From assembly GCA_001179505.1 (NCBI GenBank), contig CDMY01000263.1, positions 79,829-143,828 on the forward strand: a DNA stretch of 64,000 bases. Direction: 5' to 3'. Below are positions 1 through 9,050 of this stretch, in pieces; the first letter of the stretch is position 1, and each line of letters begins with the position of its first letter. The position numbers and the translations under genes are program-made. A model generated the notes under the pieces. It worked only from the letters and a program-made list of their open reading frames with translations, made no database searches and was not told the DNA's origin. The DNA is from Vitrella brassicaformis CCMP3155. Lineage: Eukaryota; Protista; Chromerida.

Positions 1-3000
1 GGCTCTGTTGAGCAACAAGCCCCGGGCTGTCTCTGTGGACGCCGTGGTCGACACCAAAGTCTACACACTCGACGCAGAAGCATTCGGTCACACAGCAAAG
101 CAACCTGAACAGTCATCGGACTCTGTGTATGTATGTTTGCTCGACGTGTTTCCCGATTGATCTTTGTTTTGCAGAGCGCTTGTTGGGCCCTCTGAGCGAC
201 GTTCTTCGCCGCAATATGGATTTGTATGCCAAGTGGATGGCCAAAGTCAAGAAAGAGGACGAGGGCGACGAACAGAGCCCGTCGTCACGGGACGTCGATA
301 CGACTCTCTCTGAAGTATGTGTGTATTTAGCGTCAGTGAATCGTCATTGAATTTGTATCGTGATTCACAGGCGACTCGTTCGCGTCACGATGACGAGGAT
401 CAAGAGCAGGAGGAGACCGACGAGTCGCCCGCCTCACGCACCGCATCACCCGAAGCGCAGAGCATTTACACCAGAAACAGAAGAGGTCACCACCAGATTC
501 GCCTGGAAACAAAGTGTGATGTGTTGTTCTATGTATTGCCTCACCAGCGAATGTGATGGGTGAGAGTCTGGAGGACGACGCCGACTTCGTGCCGCCGGTG
601 ATTCCCAAGACTGCCGAGGACGAGCAAGTCATCTTCTCGGCTGTCGGCAAGAACGTGCTCTTCAGCCACCTGGCCAAGGAAGAGACGCGTGTCATTGTCG
701 ACGCCATGGAGGCCAAACACTTGGAGCAAGGGGAACTCATCATCAAACAAGGTATATACATATATACGTGTATATAGGGCTCAGACAGACAGACAGACAG
801 GCCAATGGTGGCCTGATGCGATGCGACACACCCAATGGACTGGACGGACACATTCATTCCTTTGTCGGTCCGCGCATGGCATGGCGGCCGGCCAGGGATG
901 GCCTGCGAGATACGCCTAGAGACAGAGAGAAAGAGATAGGCCAGCTGTGCTTGCCCCGCCTTCACATGTTTTTGGGGGCTCACTGAGCTCACCCGCGCTG
1001 CCAATGTGTTGGTGCAGGTGACGACGGCAACCACTGGTACATATTGGAGGATGGTGTGTGCGAGTGTTTCGTGCGCATCCCGGGCAAGGAGGCCGAGTAC
1101 GAGAGCGAGGACGGCAAGTTGGTCTTCACCTACAACCCCGGCATGGCCTTTGGCGAGCTGGCTTTGATGTACAACGCCCCCCGTGCGGCCACCATCCAGG
1201 CCAAGACACCCGCCAAGGTCTGGGCCCTCGACCGCAAGACATTCAAGAAGGTGCTGCAGCAGACGTCGCAGGCGACGCGCGACGTGCAGATGGACTTCAT
1301 CAACCGCTTTGAGATGTTCGACGAGCTGTCCAAGTTCGAGAAGCTGCGGCTCCTGGAGGCACTCGAGGCCAGGTATGTCGAGGCCGGACAGCGAATCATC
1401 CAGCAGGGCGACACCGGACACGAGTTCTTCATGATCGAATCGGTCAGCCAAGCCAGGGAGTGGGCTGGGTGCACTGCACCCCTTGACTTAGGGAGTCGGG
1501 TCGTGTGTACGTACCTACCTACCTACATGTGCATTGATTGCATGTACGCATACGAATACGCATATACGTGTGTGTCTCATGTGTATGTACGCAACGCATG
1601 TGTGTACATACATATACATCCGTGTGCCTGTGCGTGTGCAGGGCGAGTGCAAGTGTGTGGTGACCAACGAGCACGGCGAGGAGTCCGAATGTTTCAGACG
1701 ACTACAGGAAAGTGGCACACATTCATTGGTCGATCAGTGAATGAATGCTTCGTATGTGTGCCTCCCTGTGTCTTTTGGTAGGGTGGGGATTTCTTTGGCG
1801 AGTTGGCGCTTCTGCGCAAGAAGCCTCGTGCCGTGTCTGTGGATGCCGTGACGGACGTCAAGGTATACGTGTTGGAAGAGGAGGCCTTCGAGAGACTCCT
1901 CGGGCCCCTCGAGGAAATACTTAGGCACGTACACATGCATACACGCGTGCAGGCATGCTTACCGATGGCGTGGCGGGACCGCCCCGGCACTGCACTGCCT
2001 GCCGTGTGCATTTGGTGTGTGTGTGTGTGTGTGTGTGCAGACGCAACATGGACAACTATGCCGTCTACATGAGGAAACTCGGCCTGCAAATCGAAGACGC
2101 GGGCGAACAACAGGTAGGCACGAGTTGTGCTGGCTGGGTCAAACACGCCAGCCCAGCAACAAGGGAACGTATTTTAAGAAACGTTTGTCGGAAGGATCCA
2201 ACACGCCTTTCTATGTGTCGGCGTGGGTGCAGGCAAAGGAAGATGAGGCGCAGCAATACTCGGTGAGTGAGTGAGCAACGAAGGGTAGAGCCCGCTGAGG
2301 GGGCCCTGGCTGGTCGTGAAGCGGTCCGTGTAGCATCAAGCACTTCGTGCTTTTGCATGAACCCTGAGATATTCGGCACCTTCAGAGATTCGCCACTCCA
2401 TTCTTTCCCCTCTGTGCTGGCTGCGGGGATCTGCTTTTATTGGTTGATTCGTGCAGGCTGTGTCCATGGCGGATGAAGGTGGTGAGGGCCAGGATGGCGA
2501 TGCTGCTGATCTCAAGAGCGAATATGACGAGTCGGCACCGCCATCACCGACCGCAGCATCGGGGTAAACCAGACACGCACTTACAGCGCCCACAAAGGGA
2601 TGCCATGATTGTTCTTGCTGCCCTTTGCATATCAGGCCGCCTCCTGCCGCAGTGCGATCGAGGAGAGGTAAGACATGGACTCATATTTGAGACTGACCCT
2701 GATCGATGGAGGCAAAACCCGCACAATAAAGACAGATGAATGCACACGGGTGCATCGTACGTCCCCAGCGCTCTGTCTGTTCATTGCTGTGCAATGTGAT
2801 GACATTGCCCTCTCTGGCCTGTGGTTTATTCACCAGCGAATGTGATGGGTGAGAGTCTGGAGGACGACGCCGACTTCGTGCCGCCGGTGATTCCCAAGAC
2901 TGCCGAGGACGAGCAAGTCATCTTCTCGGCTGTCGGCAAGAACGTGCTCTTCAGCCACCTGGCCAAGGAAGAGACGCGTGTCATTGTCGACGCCATGGAG

Positions 3001-4035
3001 GCCAAACACTTGGAGCAAGGGGAACTCATCATCAAACAAGGTATATGCATATATACGTGTATATAGGGCTCAGACAGACAGACAGACAGACAGACAGGCC
3101 AATGGTGGCCTGATGCGATGCGACACACCCANNNNNNNNNNNNNNNNNNNNNNNNNNNNNNNNNNNNNNNNNNNNNNNNNNNNNNNNNNNNNNNNNNNNN
3201 NNNNNNNNNNNNNNNNNNNNNNNNNNNNNNNNNNNNNNNNNNNNNNNNNNNNNNNNNNNNNNNNNNNNNNNNNNNNNNNNNNNNNNNNNNNNNNNNNNNN
3301 NNNNNNNNNNNNNNNNNNNNNNNNNNNNNNNNNNNNNNNNNNNNNNNNNNNNNNNNNNNNNNNNNNNNNNNNNNNNNNNNNNNNNNNNNNNNNNNNNNNN
3401 NNNNNNNNNNNNNNNNNNNNNNNNNNNNNNNATGTGTGTCTCCCTGTGTCTTTTGGTAGGGTGGGGATTTCTTTGGCGAGTTGGCGCTTCTGCGCAAGAA
3501 GCCTCGTGCCGTGTCTGTGGATGCCGTGACGGACGTCAAGGTATACGTGTTGGAAGAGGAGGCCTTCGAGAGACTCCTCGGGCCCCTCGAGGAAATACTC
3601 AGGCACGTACACATGCATACACGCGTGCAGGCATGCTTACCGATGGCGTGGCGGGACCGCCCCGGCACTGCACTGCCTGCCGTGTGCATTTGGTGTGTGT
3701 GTGTGTGTGTGTGTGTGTGCAGACGCAACATGGACAACTATGCCGTCTACATGAAGAAACTCGGACTGCAAATCGAAGACGCGGGCGAACAACAGGTAGG
3801 CACGAGTTGTGCTGGCTGGGTCAAACACGCCAGCCCAGCAACAAGGGAATGTGACAAGTGAGGACTGCACGACTTCGTCTGGCTGTATTTATCTCGCAGC
3901 AAGCAGAATGAGCGCAGCGCCACTCGGTCTCTGGAGCAGTCTTTAACACACCAAACTTTGTTCTCTATATATGGTGGGTGTGTGTTTCGGTTCCATCAGG
4001 TTGCATCCATTGAGTCCGAGGCACCAGAATCGTAA
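1..4035 (+). CDS. Multi-module cAMP-dependent protein kinase regulatory-subunit-like protein (at least 3 tandem R modules); 5' end lies outside the window, 3' end uncertain (3861 or ~4035)
   Basis: Spliced exons 1-86, 175-315, 371-485, 548-751, 1018-1442, 1642-1707, 1782-1924, 2041-2113, 2233-2262, 2457-2563, 2636-2667, 2837-3040, [gap], 3460-3602, 3723-3795 form one frame. CNB phosphate-binding cassettes are [16 protein letters not shown] and [16 protein letters not shown]. An RRANVMGES motif precedes modules 2 and 3. Confidence 0.85.
541..2167 (+). repeat. Copy 1 of a ~1.6 kb near-identical intragenic duplication (PKA-R module 2)
   Basis: Matches 2830-3131 and 3432-3849 apart from a few SNPs and microsatellite copy number; flanks are unique. 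Confidence 0.9.
2830..3849 (+). repeat. Copy 2 of the intragenic duplication (PKA-R module 3), interrupted by an N gap
   Basis: Direct alignment by eye with 541-2167. Confidence 0.9.
3132..3431. other. Assembly gap (300 N); nominal size is smaller than the ~920 bp homologous segment (832-1751)
   Basis: N run; both flanks align to module 2. Confidence 0.95.
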
Positions 4036-4535
4036 AGTGGATTGGCTTTTTCCGCTTCCATGTTAGCTGCGCTGCACTGCGGTGAATGTGCCACCCAATA
4101 AATGATCGGGTAAATGGCGGGGGAACTATGGGCTGCAGTATCTTTGAAAGGCTGAGGGATTCCAGTTCACCATGTCGCTCGCACGAAGTCAAGGCAGCCA
4201 GCCTTCCATGCAGTCAGTCAGAAGCAGACCTCTACTGCCCCTCCCCCCGCGCCCCTCGCCCGTCCCGCCTTTGATAGGCCACAGACAGACCCCATCAATT
4301 CAATTAAAACGACCATCCATCCATCCATAAATTCACTCATTCAGGTACACGGACACGGACACACAGAAAGGCGGACAGATGGACTCATTCACACGGCACA
4401 GACCCCCATGGCACAAAAGTCACACGCCTCGCCTCACACGCGCGTCGGGTCCGTCCACTCAGCCAAGCCAGATGTGCACATAGACACGTCGATGACGTCA
4501 GTCACGGAATTGATAGTCCTGCACGGGCCAAATGA

Positions 4536-7500
4536 CTAGTCCGCCTCCTGCAGTGCAGTGCACCCACCCACACGTTCACTCTCAGTCATTCCCTGCAGTG
4601 AGTGTGTGCGCTTGCTGGTGGTAGCTCCCTCACCTCGATTTCGTCGACCTTGCCGACGGCGATTGTCTTAGCTACAAGGCACCACACACAGACCGACGGA
4701 CAGCAGATGAGATGTGCTGGCGGTGTGCATCGAAACCACGAGTGCTTTTCATTGATTCATTTCTTACCTCCATCCCGCAGTGTGAATCTTCCGAGCTGAG
4801 GTCGGATCGCGTAGGGCTCCAAACACATAGGAGACACAAGCTGCCCCGCCCCACACAACAAGCAATAACACGCAAACGCATCCATCCATCTGCCTGGCCA
4901 GCTGTCTCGGTGTTGGTGCAGGTGTGTGTGTGTGTGGGGGGGGGGAGGGTAGCCACCCACCTGCATTCTGCATTTGACCATGCAGCTGCTCTTGATGAAC
5001 TGCGGGTTGGTCTTCTTCTTCTTGGTGGCGCGATCCGTCGACTCTGGTCAACATGACCCCAATCACGTGCCCGTCCATCCCGCCCACCCAGTGTGTATGT
5101 CCTTCTTTGCGGTCATTCCCTCCCCATCCCTCACCGAGCAGCTGTAGAATCTGGACCTCCTCACAGGCCGTGTGGGCATGGAATACTGAAGATTGATCGA
5201 TGCGATGTACACACAGACAATGGTTTTCCTCACTGCTGCGCTGCGGAGTTCCAGCACTCCCCGTGTGAGTGTGTACCACAAGAGTATCCTGCGGTGATTA
5301 TGGGTGGGTGCTCCGGCAGCTCCACAATATTCACCTGCAGAGGAGGGGATAAGTCGGGAAGGACCAAGCCAAGCAACCAATGGTAAGTAAGAGGAAGCTA
5401 GCCCTGTCTGTCTGTCTGTACCTACCGTGGCTTTGAATGTGGATATGACAGGGCAGGGGTGCTTGGCGGTACACAGCACGTAGCCCTTGCAGATCTGGTC
5501 CTCCTCAACACCTGACACCTTCAGCTGCGCACACACGCACACACACACAAGATGGCGATGGACAAGGGTGGAGAGGTGCTTCGGCTGGCTGGCCGGCTGG
5601 CTGGGTGGTGGGTGGTCCGTCCTACCGCCACGTTTTCTCCAGGTCTGGCGATGTCTACCTCGTCTTCATCGACAAACACACTCAAAATCTTGACTCGGTT
5701 CTTGTTGGGCATCAGCAAACACTGAACAAACAAAGATATTAGGCCCTCCCGTGATTCCTGATCAGTCGGACTGTCTGTACTTACGTGTGCATTGGCCTTG
5801 ACGACTCCTGCTTCGACCTTGCCCATGGCCATGACGCCCTGGTCCTTGTAGCCCGACAGCAGTGGGATCCTCAGGGGGTCATCCACACGACGGTCGGGCG
5901 GGACCAAACCATCAAACAACTCCCACAACGTCGGCTGTAGTGACCACCAGCCAGGCCAGCAACAGATACGCCAGTTAGTCCATGTAAGCATACCGTGGAC
6001 GTGTTTATGTGTGTACGTTGGCCTAGATTGACTGACATGATTGACGTACGTACCTTGTCCCTTCCGTACCAGCTGCCTTTCGCATGGTAGCTCTTCGGGT
6101 TTGAGGCGTCACTGACGTGATGCTGCAGCATAGATAACATCGATCGATCGATGCCCACCCCACCCCACCCAAGGCAGGCCAGGCCAGGCCCCCTCCATGC
6201 CATGCCATGCATGTGTGTTGTGATGTTGTGTGCTGTCTGTCTTGTGCTGTGCCGACCTTGAGGTTGGATCCGGTGAGTCCCGATATGGGGATGAAGAAGA
6301 TGTCCTTGGCGGGGTTGAAGAACTGACGCAAGTACGGAGTCAGCTTCTTCTCGATGTCAGTGTACCTGCGCAATGCGGGCGAGCCACAGCCCATCCTTAT
6401 GTCTCAAGCAGGCAACCGATTTCTGTTGTGTGCCTACCTGTTCTCATCCCAATCGCACGTTGGGTCGTCCATCTTGTTGATGGCCACAATCAACTGGGTC
6501 ACACCTGCCCGTCACACACACACAGACAGACAGACAGACAGCAGAAGACGGGAGGGAGGGAAGAGTCAGACACGTCCGTCCATCCGTGTGCACATTCGTC
6601 GCTGCTCAGAGTACACTCACTCCCTCCTGCAAATGTGTGTGCGTACCTAGTGTCTTGGCCAGCATGGCGTGCTCCCGCGTCTGTCCGCCGCGCTCGAAGC
6701 CCGTCTCAAACTCGCCCCTGCGCGCTGACCCACACGCGGCAAGACAGAGAGATCGCTTCAGACACCGAGGGGGCGTGTGTATGTCTGTGTTTGTCTAGGT
6801 ACAGGCGGGGCGGGCAGCGCTCACCGGAGATGATGAGCACTCCGACGTCAGCTTGTGCGGCGCCAGCAATCATATTCGGAACAAAGCTCTTGTGACCGGG
6901 AGCGTCCTGACGCCACACACACAAGCTCGTTCACACATACATACCACGTCATGTCGTGTATGTCCTTGTTCCTTCCTGTGGTGAATGAGAGTGATTCACT
7001 CGCTGACCAGTATGGTGAATCTTCGGTTGTCTGTTTCGAACTTGGCCCTGCCGACCTCCACAGTCTTCCCCTGCACACATTCGACAATACAATGCATACC
7101 CACCTGCCCGCCTGACCATTTTCCCGCCCGTTGACTGACTGACTGACTGACGTACGGCGCACCTTGGCCCTTTCCTCCTCGTTGATGTCCATGATAAAGG
7201 CGAGGAACCAACTCTCGCGGTTCTTGTCTGCACACACCACACCACACCACACCACACATGCCCTCATTCCGTCCACCAATGACTGACTCATTGATTGCTT
7301 GGTGGGTGGGTGATCGATCGCCTGGCCCGGTGTCCTACCTACCTTTGGCCTCCTTCTCGTACTTTTCGATGGTACGCTGGTCCACCTGGCCCGACAGATA
7401 CCTACACACATACACACGGGGGAACAGAGACACACAGACAGACAGACATTTATTGATTGATGCTGATTGTTGACTATGAGTGAGTTTGATGCTGATTGTT

Positions 7501-9050
7501 TGCTATGAGTGAGTATGGGTGCTTGCCTTGCTTACAAGATGTTGCCGCATGTTGTGGACTTGCCAGCGTCTGATGGGCGTCGTGCAGCCAGGCAGCCACA
7601 TCGACACGTATGAGATACATACTAGTAAAGCCGACTGGGTGTACGTTTAGGTGAGTGAGTGAATCCTCGCTTGCTTACCGACGTGTCCGATGAATACGAT
7701 GTTGAGGTGAGGCCTGTCATCTGCCTGTCGGATCTTCTTGCCCTCAGCGGTCGATGCCTCGCCGCCCTCGTCCTCATCGTTTTCCTCGTCGGCCTCGTCA
7801 TCCTCACCCTCCTGATCCACACCCTCATCCCTGGCGACTGGTCCATCGCCCACTGGTGCACTACCGTCGGTCGACCCACACACCGCCGCACCTGGTGGTT
7901 GGTGCACCCCCACCCCATCGATCCCCGCCGCAGATGACGGGTCGGCCTCAGTGGTGGCCTCGGCAGCAGACTCCTCAGCCGCACCACCCACCTTAGACCC
8001 CGACGATAGGGGAGCGGGGGGTTGCTCGACGGGGGCTGGCGGCTGTGGGGTGGCATTGGCATTGGCATCTGCCTCGTCCTCCTCCCATGACTCACTGACG
8101 TCTGCGGGGTGTGCGTGTGTGGATGGGGTATGCTGGGCAGCCGACGGGGGGACGGACGAGGGCGGAGGGGGAGGGGGGGCGCCTGGGGGGGTCGGGTAAG
8201 ACCCCGATGCGACCCTCTCACCGCCAACATGACCGTTGCGGGGTCCACCATACATACCGTACCCTATTTATATATTGACACAAATCAACCAATGGTACGA
8301 CAAGCCAAGCAACAAACAAACAGTGCACTCAACCAGCCAGCCCATAGGCAGGCAGGCAGGCAGGCCGGCCACATGCAAGACAAGCATGGTCTGACTGACT
8401 GACTGACTGATGGACAGACAGGTGTGTGTCTGGCCTGCATGAATGACCTACCGCCAGGAGGTTGGTTGTGGACCTGCTGCTGCGACGGGAGGCCCATCTA
8501 CACACAGCAGTAAGTAAGGACATACGTTCGTGTGCAGCACAGGCAGGCAGGCAGGCAGGCAGGCAGAACCAAGATTTGTGTGTGTGCGTATGATGTGTGA
8601 CGGCACCGCCCGTCTGCGATTCGATTTGTATGCACCCCAGGTGCGTGCGTGCGTCCATCCGTACCTGCTGTTGCTGCTGCATCATGTTGATGTTGTAGTG
8701 GTGGTTGTGCTGTCCCCCCGGTGCGGGCGGGGGAGGGGGAGGCATCGGCCGCCCATAACCCTGCTGGCTGTAACCCTGCTGCTGACCACCAGGGGCGGCA
8801 AAACCACCTGTTTGTGTCACACAACCAGCCATGAGTCACACCGCAAATGGAATGAGCCGAGGTGCCAGAATGATCGGACGATTGAGTGGCAGCCGCCACG
8901 GCCAACGGTGCTGCCTGCCTGCCCTGCCTGCCTCGTCTATCTGTCTGCCTGTGCGACATGCGACGAACTCAAGACTGACGTAGCAAGTGTGCCTGCCTGC
9001 CTACCGGGTGTGAATGATGCCGCATTGGGATTGAAGTTGAAGTTGGACAT
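4536..9050 (-). CDS. eRF3: Eukaryotic peptide chain release factor 3 (eRF3/Sup35/GSPT), multi-exon
   Basis: N-terminus [15 protein letters not shown] (PAM2-like), then a Q/G/Y-rich and an acidic region. G-domain motifs [84 protein letters not shown] and INKMDD. EF-Tu-like domains II/III follow. The last exon is tentative. Confidence 0.95.

Follow-up and report, generated by a model that had tools for sequence, protein, structure and literature searches.

A Gene for a Concatenated PKA Regulatory Subunit with Repeated RRxNV Sites in Vitrella brassicaformis

A single nuclear gene at the beginning of a 64,000-nucleotide stretch of the Vitrella brassicaformis assembly (72.7 Mb, 1064 contigs) encodes a regulatory (R) subunit of cyclic AMP (cAMP)-dependent protein kinase (PKA) in which several R cores are concatenated in one chain. 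This stretch, referred to as the window, is C263:79829-143828 (contig CDMY01000263.1). The gene is real and is already in public databases, where it is unnamed and mis-modelled: an exact look-up identified its protein as CEL98129.1 (UniProt A0A0G4EMT7, here P0001), 972 residues from V. brassicaformis CCMP3155, listed just as 'Cyclic nucleotide-binding domain-containing protein'. In textbook PKA, an R2C2 complex, a single inhibitor site and two sites for cAMP are present on each R chain, and the complex owes its cooperativity to non-covalent dimerization. The rule of one inhibitor site and one cyclic-nucleotide-binding (CNB) domain pair per R chain is broken here, with three cores in the assembly and probably four in the genome. 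We put at roughly 0.7 the probability that the product is an intact concatenated R subunit, each core of which would hold and release one catalytic subunit (PKA-C).

Results

R Modules and Inhibitor Sites

Every CNB exon is matched by Pfam cNMP_binding (PF00027). Among solved structures, those closest to module 2 are the PKA subunits RII-beta (6e-52) and RI-alpha (2e-51), which align with it along the entire R core (query residues 7-294); weaker solved relatives are cGMP-dependent protein kinase (PKG; 2e-41, in three pieces) and Epac (1e-15). All of the cassettes are of the cAMP type, with the Glu, the Arg, and the Ala that follows the Arg retained; they read PRAAT in CNB-A and PRAVS in CNB-B (FGELALL..KPRAVSV in every module). 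The inhibitor site is RRENV in module 1 and RRANV in the later modules. A canonical site, R-R-x-[S/T/A/G]-hydrophobic, lies ~20-25 residues before CNB-A. Both the position and the pattern R-R-x-?-V-x-G/S-E fit, and in an alignment with RRxSVxAE of RII the P-site residue is Asn. No kinase domain was found after the modules: the reading frame is closed by an RNA-supported stop at 3909-3911, P0001 has no kinase motif, and the next gene downstream is convergent and eRF3-like.

Gene Structure and Transcripts

The gene begins upstream of the window, and sequence was examined over 20 kb upstream and over a 5951-nt locus, L004, that spans the whole gene (window coordinate = L004 - 1829). Contigs of four public runs were aligned to L004: X11, X13, and X15, which are RNA-like, and X2, which is DNA. 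The contigs of the first three are spliced, the joints being GT..AG on the + strand, and these runs are therefore taken as RNA-derived; X2, from an independent study, is unspliced DNA. The start codon is the ATG at L002:8346 (window -1654; MSWKIKRAS...), which is shared with the public model, and therefore the protein has no N-myristoylation motif. The first upstream ATG, at L002:8291 (MGLGAV...), was rejected as the start, being out of frame with exon 2. It opens a frame, MGLGAVGAPSRRQ..., at L002:8291-8372 (window -1709 to -1628) that overlaps the true start out of frame and may be an overlapping upstream open reading frame (ORF).

Exons 1-12 encode the N-terminal domain, site 1 (TYTRKRRENVFSE), CNB-A1, CNB-B1, and acidic linker 1, and the upstream exons of module 1 lie at L002:8346-9908. 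The exons that follow in the window are listed in Table 1. The sites of the later modules are rebuilt by phase-1 splicing, in which exons 371-485 and 2636-2667, each ending in RR plus one base, are joined to the duplicated exon 548-751 = 2837-3040, which begins with (A)NV. The protein ends in ...EDAGEQQQAE, and the exon with its in-frame TGA (3909-3911) is present in all three RNA runs.

Three faults separate the public model from this structure. It jumps the assembly gap (KEETRVI/GGDFF), it takes a later GT for the GA donor and thereby inserts seven residues (ESGTHSL) in CNB-B2, and it has a different C terminus. The intron concerned, 1708-1781, allows neither a GT nor a GC donor; it can be placed in four equivalent ways, and only GA..AG leaves an AG acceptor. 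The GC..AG class is represented by intron 1925-2040 and by its copy, 3603-3722. RNA contigs confirm all of these non-canonical introns; the homologous intron of module 1 is GT..AG.

The first-pass annotation of this DNA had proposed that the exons join in one frame through the linkers, that at least three R modules stand in that frame, and that the RRAN motif arises by splicing two unique linker exons onto the duplicated exon. Translation and the RNA contigs bear this out, down to the phase-1 joins and to the joints of the linker exons 2233-2262/2457-2563/2636-2667 in X11, X13, and X15. Its calls of cAMP-type cassettes, from the Ala after the Arg, and of a protein that lacks a kinase domain and is not PKG are upheld by the PRAAT and PRAVS motifs of all modules, by the position of the stop, and by the convergent neighbor. 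It had also expected more modules upstream or in the gap; module 1 indeed begins upstream, and the X2 depth, described below, suggests one further unit in the gap. Its last coding exon, 4000-4035, proved to be 3' untranslated region (UTR), the stop lying in exon 3900-3926.

Linker 2 is joined to units on both sides in three runs, and exon 12, whose GT donor is in the correct phase, is connected to module 1 in RNA. These joints bear on the possibility that the locus produces variable isoforms or separate transcripts of one, two, or more modules, by exon-block skipping or an internal start before module 2, with a chain of three or four modules made seldom or not at all. This possibility draws on the absence of junction 485/548 from the contigs shown, on the fact that block skipping between identical units is invisible to short-read contigs, and on the X11 RNA contig depth, which is 14-15 over module 1 vs 52-78 over the units. 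Nevertheless, exon 548 starts in phase 1 with no in-frame start before the inhibitor site, and the Chromera prediction described below is one chain, so that separate transcripts seem improbable as the main output of the gene. The case for continuity of module 1 with module 2 in one chain is that the donor is phase-matched, exon 548 has no start of its own, the RR/ANV motif is rebuilt across the join, and the orthologue is predicted as one chain.

Tandem Units and Copy Number

Positions 541-834 are identical to 2830-3131 (100% apart from a microsatellite), and 1754-2170 are 98-99% identical to 3432-3852; the sequence between the copies, 2171-2829, is unique. The DNA of modules 1 and 2 differs by ~30%, the CNB-A exon excepted. 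Across the gap, one contig each in X13 and X15 runs 2457-2563 -> 2636-2667 -> 2837-3040 (or its copy 548-751) -> CNB-A exon -> 1642-1707 -> 3460-3602 -> 3723-3795, where the CNB-A exon of the gap module is aligned to the copy at 1018-1442, its own copy being inside the gap. Contigs of X13 and X11 add 2113 -> 2233-2262 -> 2457 in front, and X15 extends to 3900-3926 -> 4000 onward. Because these RNA contigs carry a complete in-frame module after linker 2, the gap hides real coding sequence and is no misjoin; at least the CNB-A exon and exon 15 of that module (~920 bp) lie within it.

An N gap of nominal length between near-identical stretches could also signal an assembly artifact, the second unit being either a haplotype duplicated in error or a collapsed repeat. 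This explanation is scarcely credible, since unit end and unit start are connected by the unique linker 2171-2829 not only in RNA but also in independent DNA, where a single 722-nt X2 contig passes from unit end through the whole linker to unit start. Further X2 contigs run from module 1 into the first unit and from the last unit into unique 3' sequence, and no further copy of the unit or the linker was found elsewhere in the assembly. The mean X2 contig depth is 12.2, 12.6, and 11.7 in the flanks; 38.8, 37.4, 35.9, and 34.7 in the unit, ~3x the flanks; and 28.3 in the linker. On the simplest reading of this depth there are three units and two linkers, so that the gene probably has four R modules (~1500 residues), one 2.29-kb unit having been lost in the gap. 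The presence of at least two units, and hence of three modules (~1137 residues), is secure. RNA depth was rejected as a copy count, as the three runs disagree.

Some smaller features of the repeat were also recorded. At window 1394 all three RNA-like runs have C, and the assembly and X2 have A; the change is synonymous (CGA->CGC, Arg) and could be hidden-unit sequence, a strain difference, or editing. Intron microsatellites of the (CAGA)n / (GCCT)n type (781-800, 3078-3098; L004 730-747) are covered to contig depths in the hundreds to thousands by each of the runs, and every contig breaks at them; (GT)n stands directly before the acceptors at 2039 and 3721.

The N-Terminal Domain

An AlphaFold2 (AF2) model of residues 1-60 consists of three helices with a predicted local distance difference test score (pLDDT) of 91. 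Its top Foldseek matches are all docking/dimerization (D/D) domains, namely RI-alpha 5hvz_B (template modeling score by target 0.87, root-mean-square deviation 1.0), 3im4_B, Dpy-30, RII-alpha, and RI-beta. A sub-threshold Pfam Dpy-30 match (E 0.03) is found in the N terminus of both the Vitrella and the Chromera protein; a PF02197 (RIIa) profile search of the genome gave a match at another locus (C395) only, not at the concatemer gene. A genome search with PF00433 matched nothing, controls included, and carries no information. The motif E-Y-x3-H-x-V/I-x2-L-L-x2-M-L-x2-L-x4-P-x2-P-I-x2-M is common to other R subunits. With the caveat that these matches carry, the N terminus is read as an RI-like D/D domain, carried by the module 1 end only. 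In R subunits this domain forms a four-helix bundle, and some protist R subunits lack it.

PKA Partners and a Predicted Complex

At least three PKA-C-like genes are present in Vitrella, at C964:26944-27168, C708:68607-69035 (P0280), and C781:100656-101345 (P0291). The C964 gene has a metazoan-like RTWTLCGTPEYLAPEII, and those on C708 and C781 have FRT(Y/D)TLCGTPEYIAPEVLLNKG; in P0291, which is the public model for the gene on C781, an in-frame intron appears to have been kept (RQAKTERGRRRRRHERACLPVS). The genome also contains a second, canonical-looking PKA R gene (C366:54190-56200, minus strand), with the D/D-like N terminus MSAAEHQDYIQSKINPLLEALVTQLLLDKPDDP, two CNB domains, and a site (PRQSVSAEAYG) whose P-site residue is Ser. 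P0008, an environmental protein built from three identical R units, has a similar site.

A complex of P0280, ATP, and 2 Mg with residues 452-640 of P0001 (module 2) was predicted in three runs, along with controls. The complex score was 0.86 in all three runs vs 0.13 for the best control; in calibration, 51 of 78 solved complexes but also 2 of 108 mismatched pairs scored as high as this mark. Contacts agree at a level of at least 69% between runs, and the pLDDT of the partner is at least 78. In the predicted pose, R466-L475 occupy the cleft, with N469 at the P-site, where it touches catalytic-loop and DFG positions, and V470 at P+1. Cassette A (582-592) rests on the C-lobe, as in solved RI-alpha:C complexes. 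From this prediction and from the conservation of RRxNV in Chromera, Colpodella, and a further transcriptome, we infer that several catalytic subunits may bind per chain, with Asn at the P-site.

A different function can be imagined for the same chain, that of a cAMP buffer or scaffold without inhibition of PKA-C, in which RRxNV would persist as a relic and the chain, with 6-8 cAMP sites, would act mainly as a sink of high capacity or bind other partners. In favor of this reading, Asn is outside the canonical P-site set of Ser/Thr/Ala/Gly, the canonical Ser-site R on C366 could serve PKA-C, and all CNB cassettes are intact. Relics, however, are difficult to reconcile with the conservation of RRxNV and the subsequent V-x-[GS]-E in every Vitrella module, in the first two Chromera modules, in Colpodella, and in a further transcriptome, or with the predicted complex, which seats RRxNV in the catalytic cleft with high confidence relative to the controls. 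The probability of a pure cAMP sink is accordingly low.

Relatives and Module History

The orthologue in Chromera velia, Cvel_7125 (A0A0G4HJP1, 1139 residues), has the same N terminus and three full, mutually diverged modules with the sites RRENV, RRDNV, and RRDVV. Colpodella angusta has a single-module form (EP00388_P015078, 496 residues; RRRRENVF), and one further transcriptome protein has RRTNV. So, as judged by these sequences, a putative Asn pseudosubstrate marks a chrompodellid R subfamily, distinct from the canonical Vitrella R on C366.

Outside CNB-A, the Chromera modules are 35-49% identical to each other. The identity of the CNB-A cores is 91% within Vitrella and 88% within Chromera (modules 1 and 2), and 53-66% between the species. 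In Vitrella, window 1038-1249 and L002:9280-9491 (CNB-A exon bases 21-232) differ at one position in 212 nt, and the flanks are 63-73% identical; on the face of the sequence, this tract between modules 1 and 2 is a sharp gene conversion. The Chromera orthologue shows the same within-species homogenization of CNB-A. In the module tree, modules cluster by species, but concerted evolution accounts for this at least in part, and the duplications cannot be dated from the tree. The inhibitor-site region of Chromera module 1 is nearer to that of Vitrella module 1 than to those of Chromera modules 2 and 3, and in CNB-B Chromera module 1 is nearer to both Vitrella modules. These region-wise identities, taken with the conversion tract, suggest that the multi-module form is probably older than the Chromera/Vitrella split and has undergone concerted evolution since. 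Independent module duplications in Chromera and Vitrella are possible.

The linkers and the Chromera modules bear on another fate of the chain, which might be translated whole and then cut in the acidic linkers into single R subunits; concatenation would then be a dosage device, with no multivalent holoenzyme. Alveolates make some abundant proteins as polyproteins, and repeated-unit precursors are known in dinoflagellates. Near-identical units between disordered acidic/Pro-rich linkers would suit such a precursor, and proteins of three identical R units exist elsewhere (P0008). On the other hand, linkers 1 and 2 are unique sequences that have only the inhibitor site in common, so that there is no conserved processing linker. 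The Chromera modules and linkers have diverged yet are in one frame, which fits selection on the whole chain, and since the D/D domain is on module 1 alone, cleavage products would be unlike one another. We know of no cleavage site or protease for the concatemer, and consider a polyprotein unlikely.

A wide protein search was made with one 141-residue exon as the query, and the best 150 representatives were examined. Of these, 50 lack a kinase motif and contain at least two full cores, with multi-core proteins ranking at the top, and 25 have a basic site before at least two cores, by a loose pattern. P0002 of the malawimonad Gefionella okellyi has six cores, each after a site such as KRRVGVSAE. 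Two cores are present in P0012 of the foraminifer Nonionella stella and in the P0019/P0156 cluster, which holds a Noctiluca scintillans protein. In these other protist multi-module R-like proteins, which are transcriptome or metagenome predictions, the P-site is RI-like (Gly/Ala) or RII-like (Ser), and many have a site such as RRVGVSAE ahead of each unit. The multi-module proteins are spread over different clades in the module tree, so that concatenation appears to have more than one origin. The first-pass annotation had called for a search of alveolates for other multi-unit proteins, and the three-module Chromera protein and the Gefionella, Nonionella, and Noctiluca-like examples, which also extend beyond alveolates, are of that kind. 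It did not foresee the D/D domain, the true C terminus, the public annotation, or the spread outside alveolates. No description of multi-core R subunits or of these accessions was found within the literature searched, including PMC12083921, PMC2246266, and PMC6152992. The Vitrella concatemer is part of a wider multi-core pattern in protists that appears undescribed.

Table 1. Features of the R gene in the window (RNA contigs are those of X11, X13, and X15)
Feature	Position	Strand	Remarks
Exon 10, 3' part	1..86	+	Starts at L002:9978; CNB-B1 phosphate-binding cassette and next strands; X11 contig joins exons 8-11
Exon 11	175..314	+	C-terminal helix of CNB-B1 and start of acidic linker 1; X11 contig covers L004 2003-2143
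Exon 12	371..485	+	Unique acidic linker 1; ends IYTRNRR + one base, first half of inhibitor site 2; first 73 nt joined to exon 11 in X11
Repeat unit, copy 1	541..2170	+	Copy 2 is 2830-3852, interrupted by gap; period 2289 bp including unique linker 2171-2829
Exon 13	548..751	+	(A)NVMGES, second half of inhibitor site 2, and N-terminal helices of CNB-A2; first repeat-unit exon; placed after exon 2636-2667 by X15 contig
Exon 14	1018..1442	+	CNB-A2 barrel and cassette, B/C helices, start of CNB-B2; Pfam cNMP_binding 1.6e-17
Exon 15	1642..1707	+	RNA joints 1707/1782 and 1707/3460 in three runs
Intron	1708..1781	+	Non-canonical; joints L004 3534->3609 and 3534->5287, 3 bases of ambiguity, in X11, X13, X15
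Exon 16	1782..1924	+	CNB-B2 cassette; Pfam 1.3e-09; X11 contig ends at L004 3753 = 1924
Exon 17	2041..2113	+	End of module 2; joint 2113->2233 in X11
Linker-2 exon a	2233..2262	+	GT..AG joints on both sides in RNA contigs
Linker-2 exon b	2457..2563	+	Acidic, Pro-rich end; joints 2262->2457 and 2563->2636 in X11, X13, X15
Linker-2 exon c	2636..2667	+	Ends AVRSRR + one base, first half of next site; joint 2667->2837 in X11, X13; to identical copy at 548 in X15
First exon of next repeat unit	2837..3040	+	Identical to 548-751
Assembly gap	3132..3431	.	300 N
CNB-B cassette exon, last module	3460..3602	+	Pfam 1.3e-09; X13 and X15 RNA contigs
Last module exon	3723..3795	+	In RNA contigs
Terminal coding exon (27 nt)	3900..3926	+	QAE, then TGA at 3909-3911; joints 3795->3900 and 3926->4000, GT..AG, in X11, X13, X15
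3' UTR exon	4000..4122	+	RNA contigs run on through it; 4122 is the end of the stretch aligned, not the exon end

Neighboring Features

The convergent eRF3-like GTPase gene occupies window ~4100-8800 on the minus strand. Its best PDB matches are to eRF3a (3e-10), and Pfam gave no match on two downstream ORF pieces. Because this gene lies there, the unstranded RNA contigs run 2-2.6 kb past the 3' end of the R gene, and the 3' ends of the two genes probably overlap or abut. On the upstream side, a divergent gene at L002:6240-7790 (window -3760 to -2210, minus strand) encodes, as read by eye, a signal peptide and many Cys-rich repeats (KCPYGYEL..HKCVKYDY..YYC). Two further 300-N gaps, at window -10168..-9869 and -7920..-7621, are 2248 bp apart and may represent another collapsed tandem repeat.

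Discussion

In the intact concatenated R subunit that we favor, the chain begins with a probable RI-like D/D domain and continues with the diverged module 1 and then two, probably three, near-identical modules. What is directly observed of this picture is the reading frame, the linker exons spliced between modules, and the tandem duplication in the DNA. Each module is a complete R core, with an R-R-x-N-V site, CNB-A, and CNB-B with intact cAMP-type cassettes. Through RRxNV and the CNB-A surface each would dock one PKA-C, which would be released when cAMP occupies the two CNB domains of that module. One chain would in this way hold 3-4 kinases and a D/D dimer 6-8. The Asn P-site would make each site a non-phosphorylatable pseudosubstrate of the RI/PKI kind, and the CNB-A cores of the modules are kept alike by gene conversion.

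One of the closest known systems is PKA RI-alpha/RI-beta (PDB 2QCS, 1RGS, 5HVZ), which shares with the Vitrella protein a three-helix D/D-like N terminus, two cAMP-type CNB domains per core (core E ~1e-51), and, if the Asn site acts as predicted, a non-phosphorylatable pseudosubstrate after two Arg. The Vitrella protein differs in having three to four cores per chain where RI has one, Asn at the P-site where RI has Ala/Gly, and long acidic linkers between cores. The Chromera and Colpodella proteins belong to the same subfamily and share the N-terminal motif, the RRENV first site, and the cassettes. However, the later Vitrella units are near-identical down to their introns, whereas the Chromera modules are diverged and the Colpodella transcript has one module. 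Several tandem CNB domains in one alveolate chain are also found in apicomplexan-type PKG (four CNB domains; PDB 5DYK, 4RZ7). In contrast to the Vitrella R, with no kinase and Ala after the cassette Arg, PKG has a kinase domain in the chain, Thr after that Arg, and no repeated RRxxV; Vitrella's own PKG is located elsewhere, on C738. The protein kinase inhibitor PKI (RRNAI) has the two Arg and the hydrophobic P+1 in common with the Vitrella sites, but its Asn is at P-1 and not at the P-site, and it has neither CNB domains nor release by cAMP.

The alternatives considered above overlap in part with each other and with an intact multi-core subunit and are not exclusive. Several points weigh against the intact subunit. 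All four runs are available as contigs and not as reads, from which isoforms and units per transcript are unreadable. The RNA contigs shown cover neither 444-485 nor the junction 485/548, so that modules 1 and 2 are not directly observed together in mRNA, and a near-identical transcriptome ORF, sought with P0001, was not found. The copy number is derived from contig depth in a single DNA run and could be particular to the strain. The D/D assignment comes from a 60-residue model, a Foldseek E of ~0.05, and the Dpy-30 match below the Pfam threshold. The complex score may reflect memory of solved R:C complexes and indicates likeness rather than binding, and the proposed role of Asn at the P-site comes from sequence and the predicted complex.

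A broader proposal, to which we give even odds, is that the covalently concatenated R subunit is an unrecognized and recurrent protist route to PKA holoenzymes, in which chromerids have an Asn P-site, a CNB-A homogenized by gene conversion, and 3-4 kinases per chain or 6-8 per dimer. If so, the cAMP response, the local dose of kinase, and the buffering capacity would depart from those of textbook R2C2. The altered stoichiometry would provide a natural test of cross-talk among neighboring R:C units, and the conserved Asn would join the set of Ser/Ala/Gly pseudosubstrates. The locus is also a practical warning about public protein models, as other Vitrella models may share the missed-donor fault. 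Vitrella and Chromera are free-living relatives of the apicomplexan parasites, in which invasion and egress are under the control of cAMP/PKA. An additional R subunit, TGME49_311300, is predicted in Toxoplasma and is unstudied (PMC6152992). The history of the R family is thus relevant to Toxoplasma.

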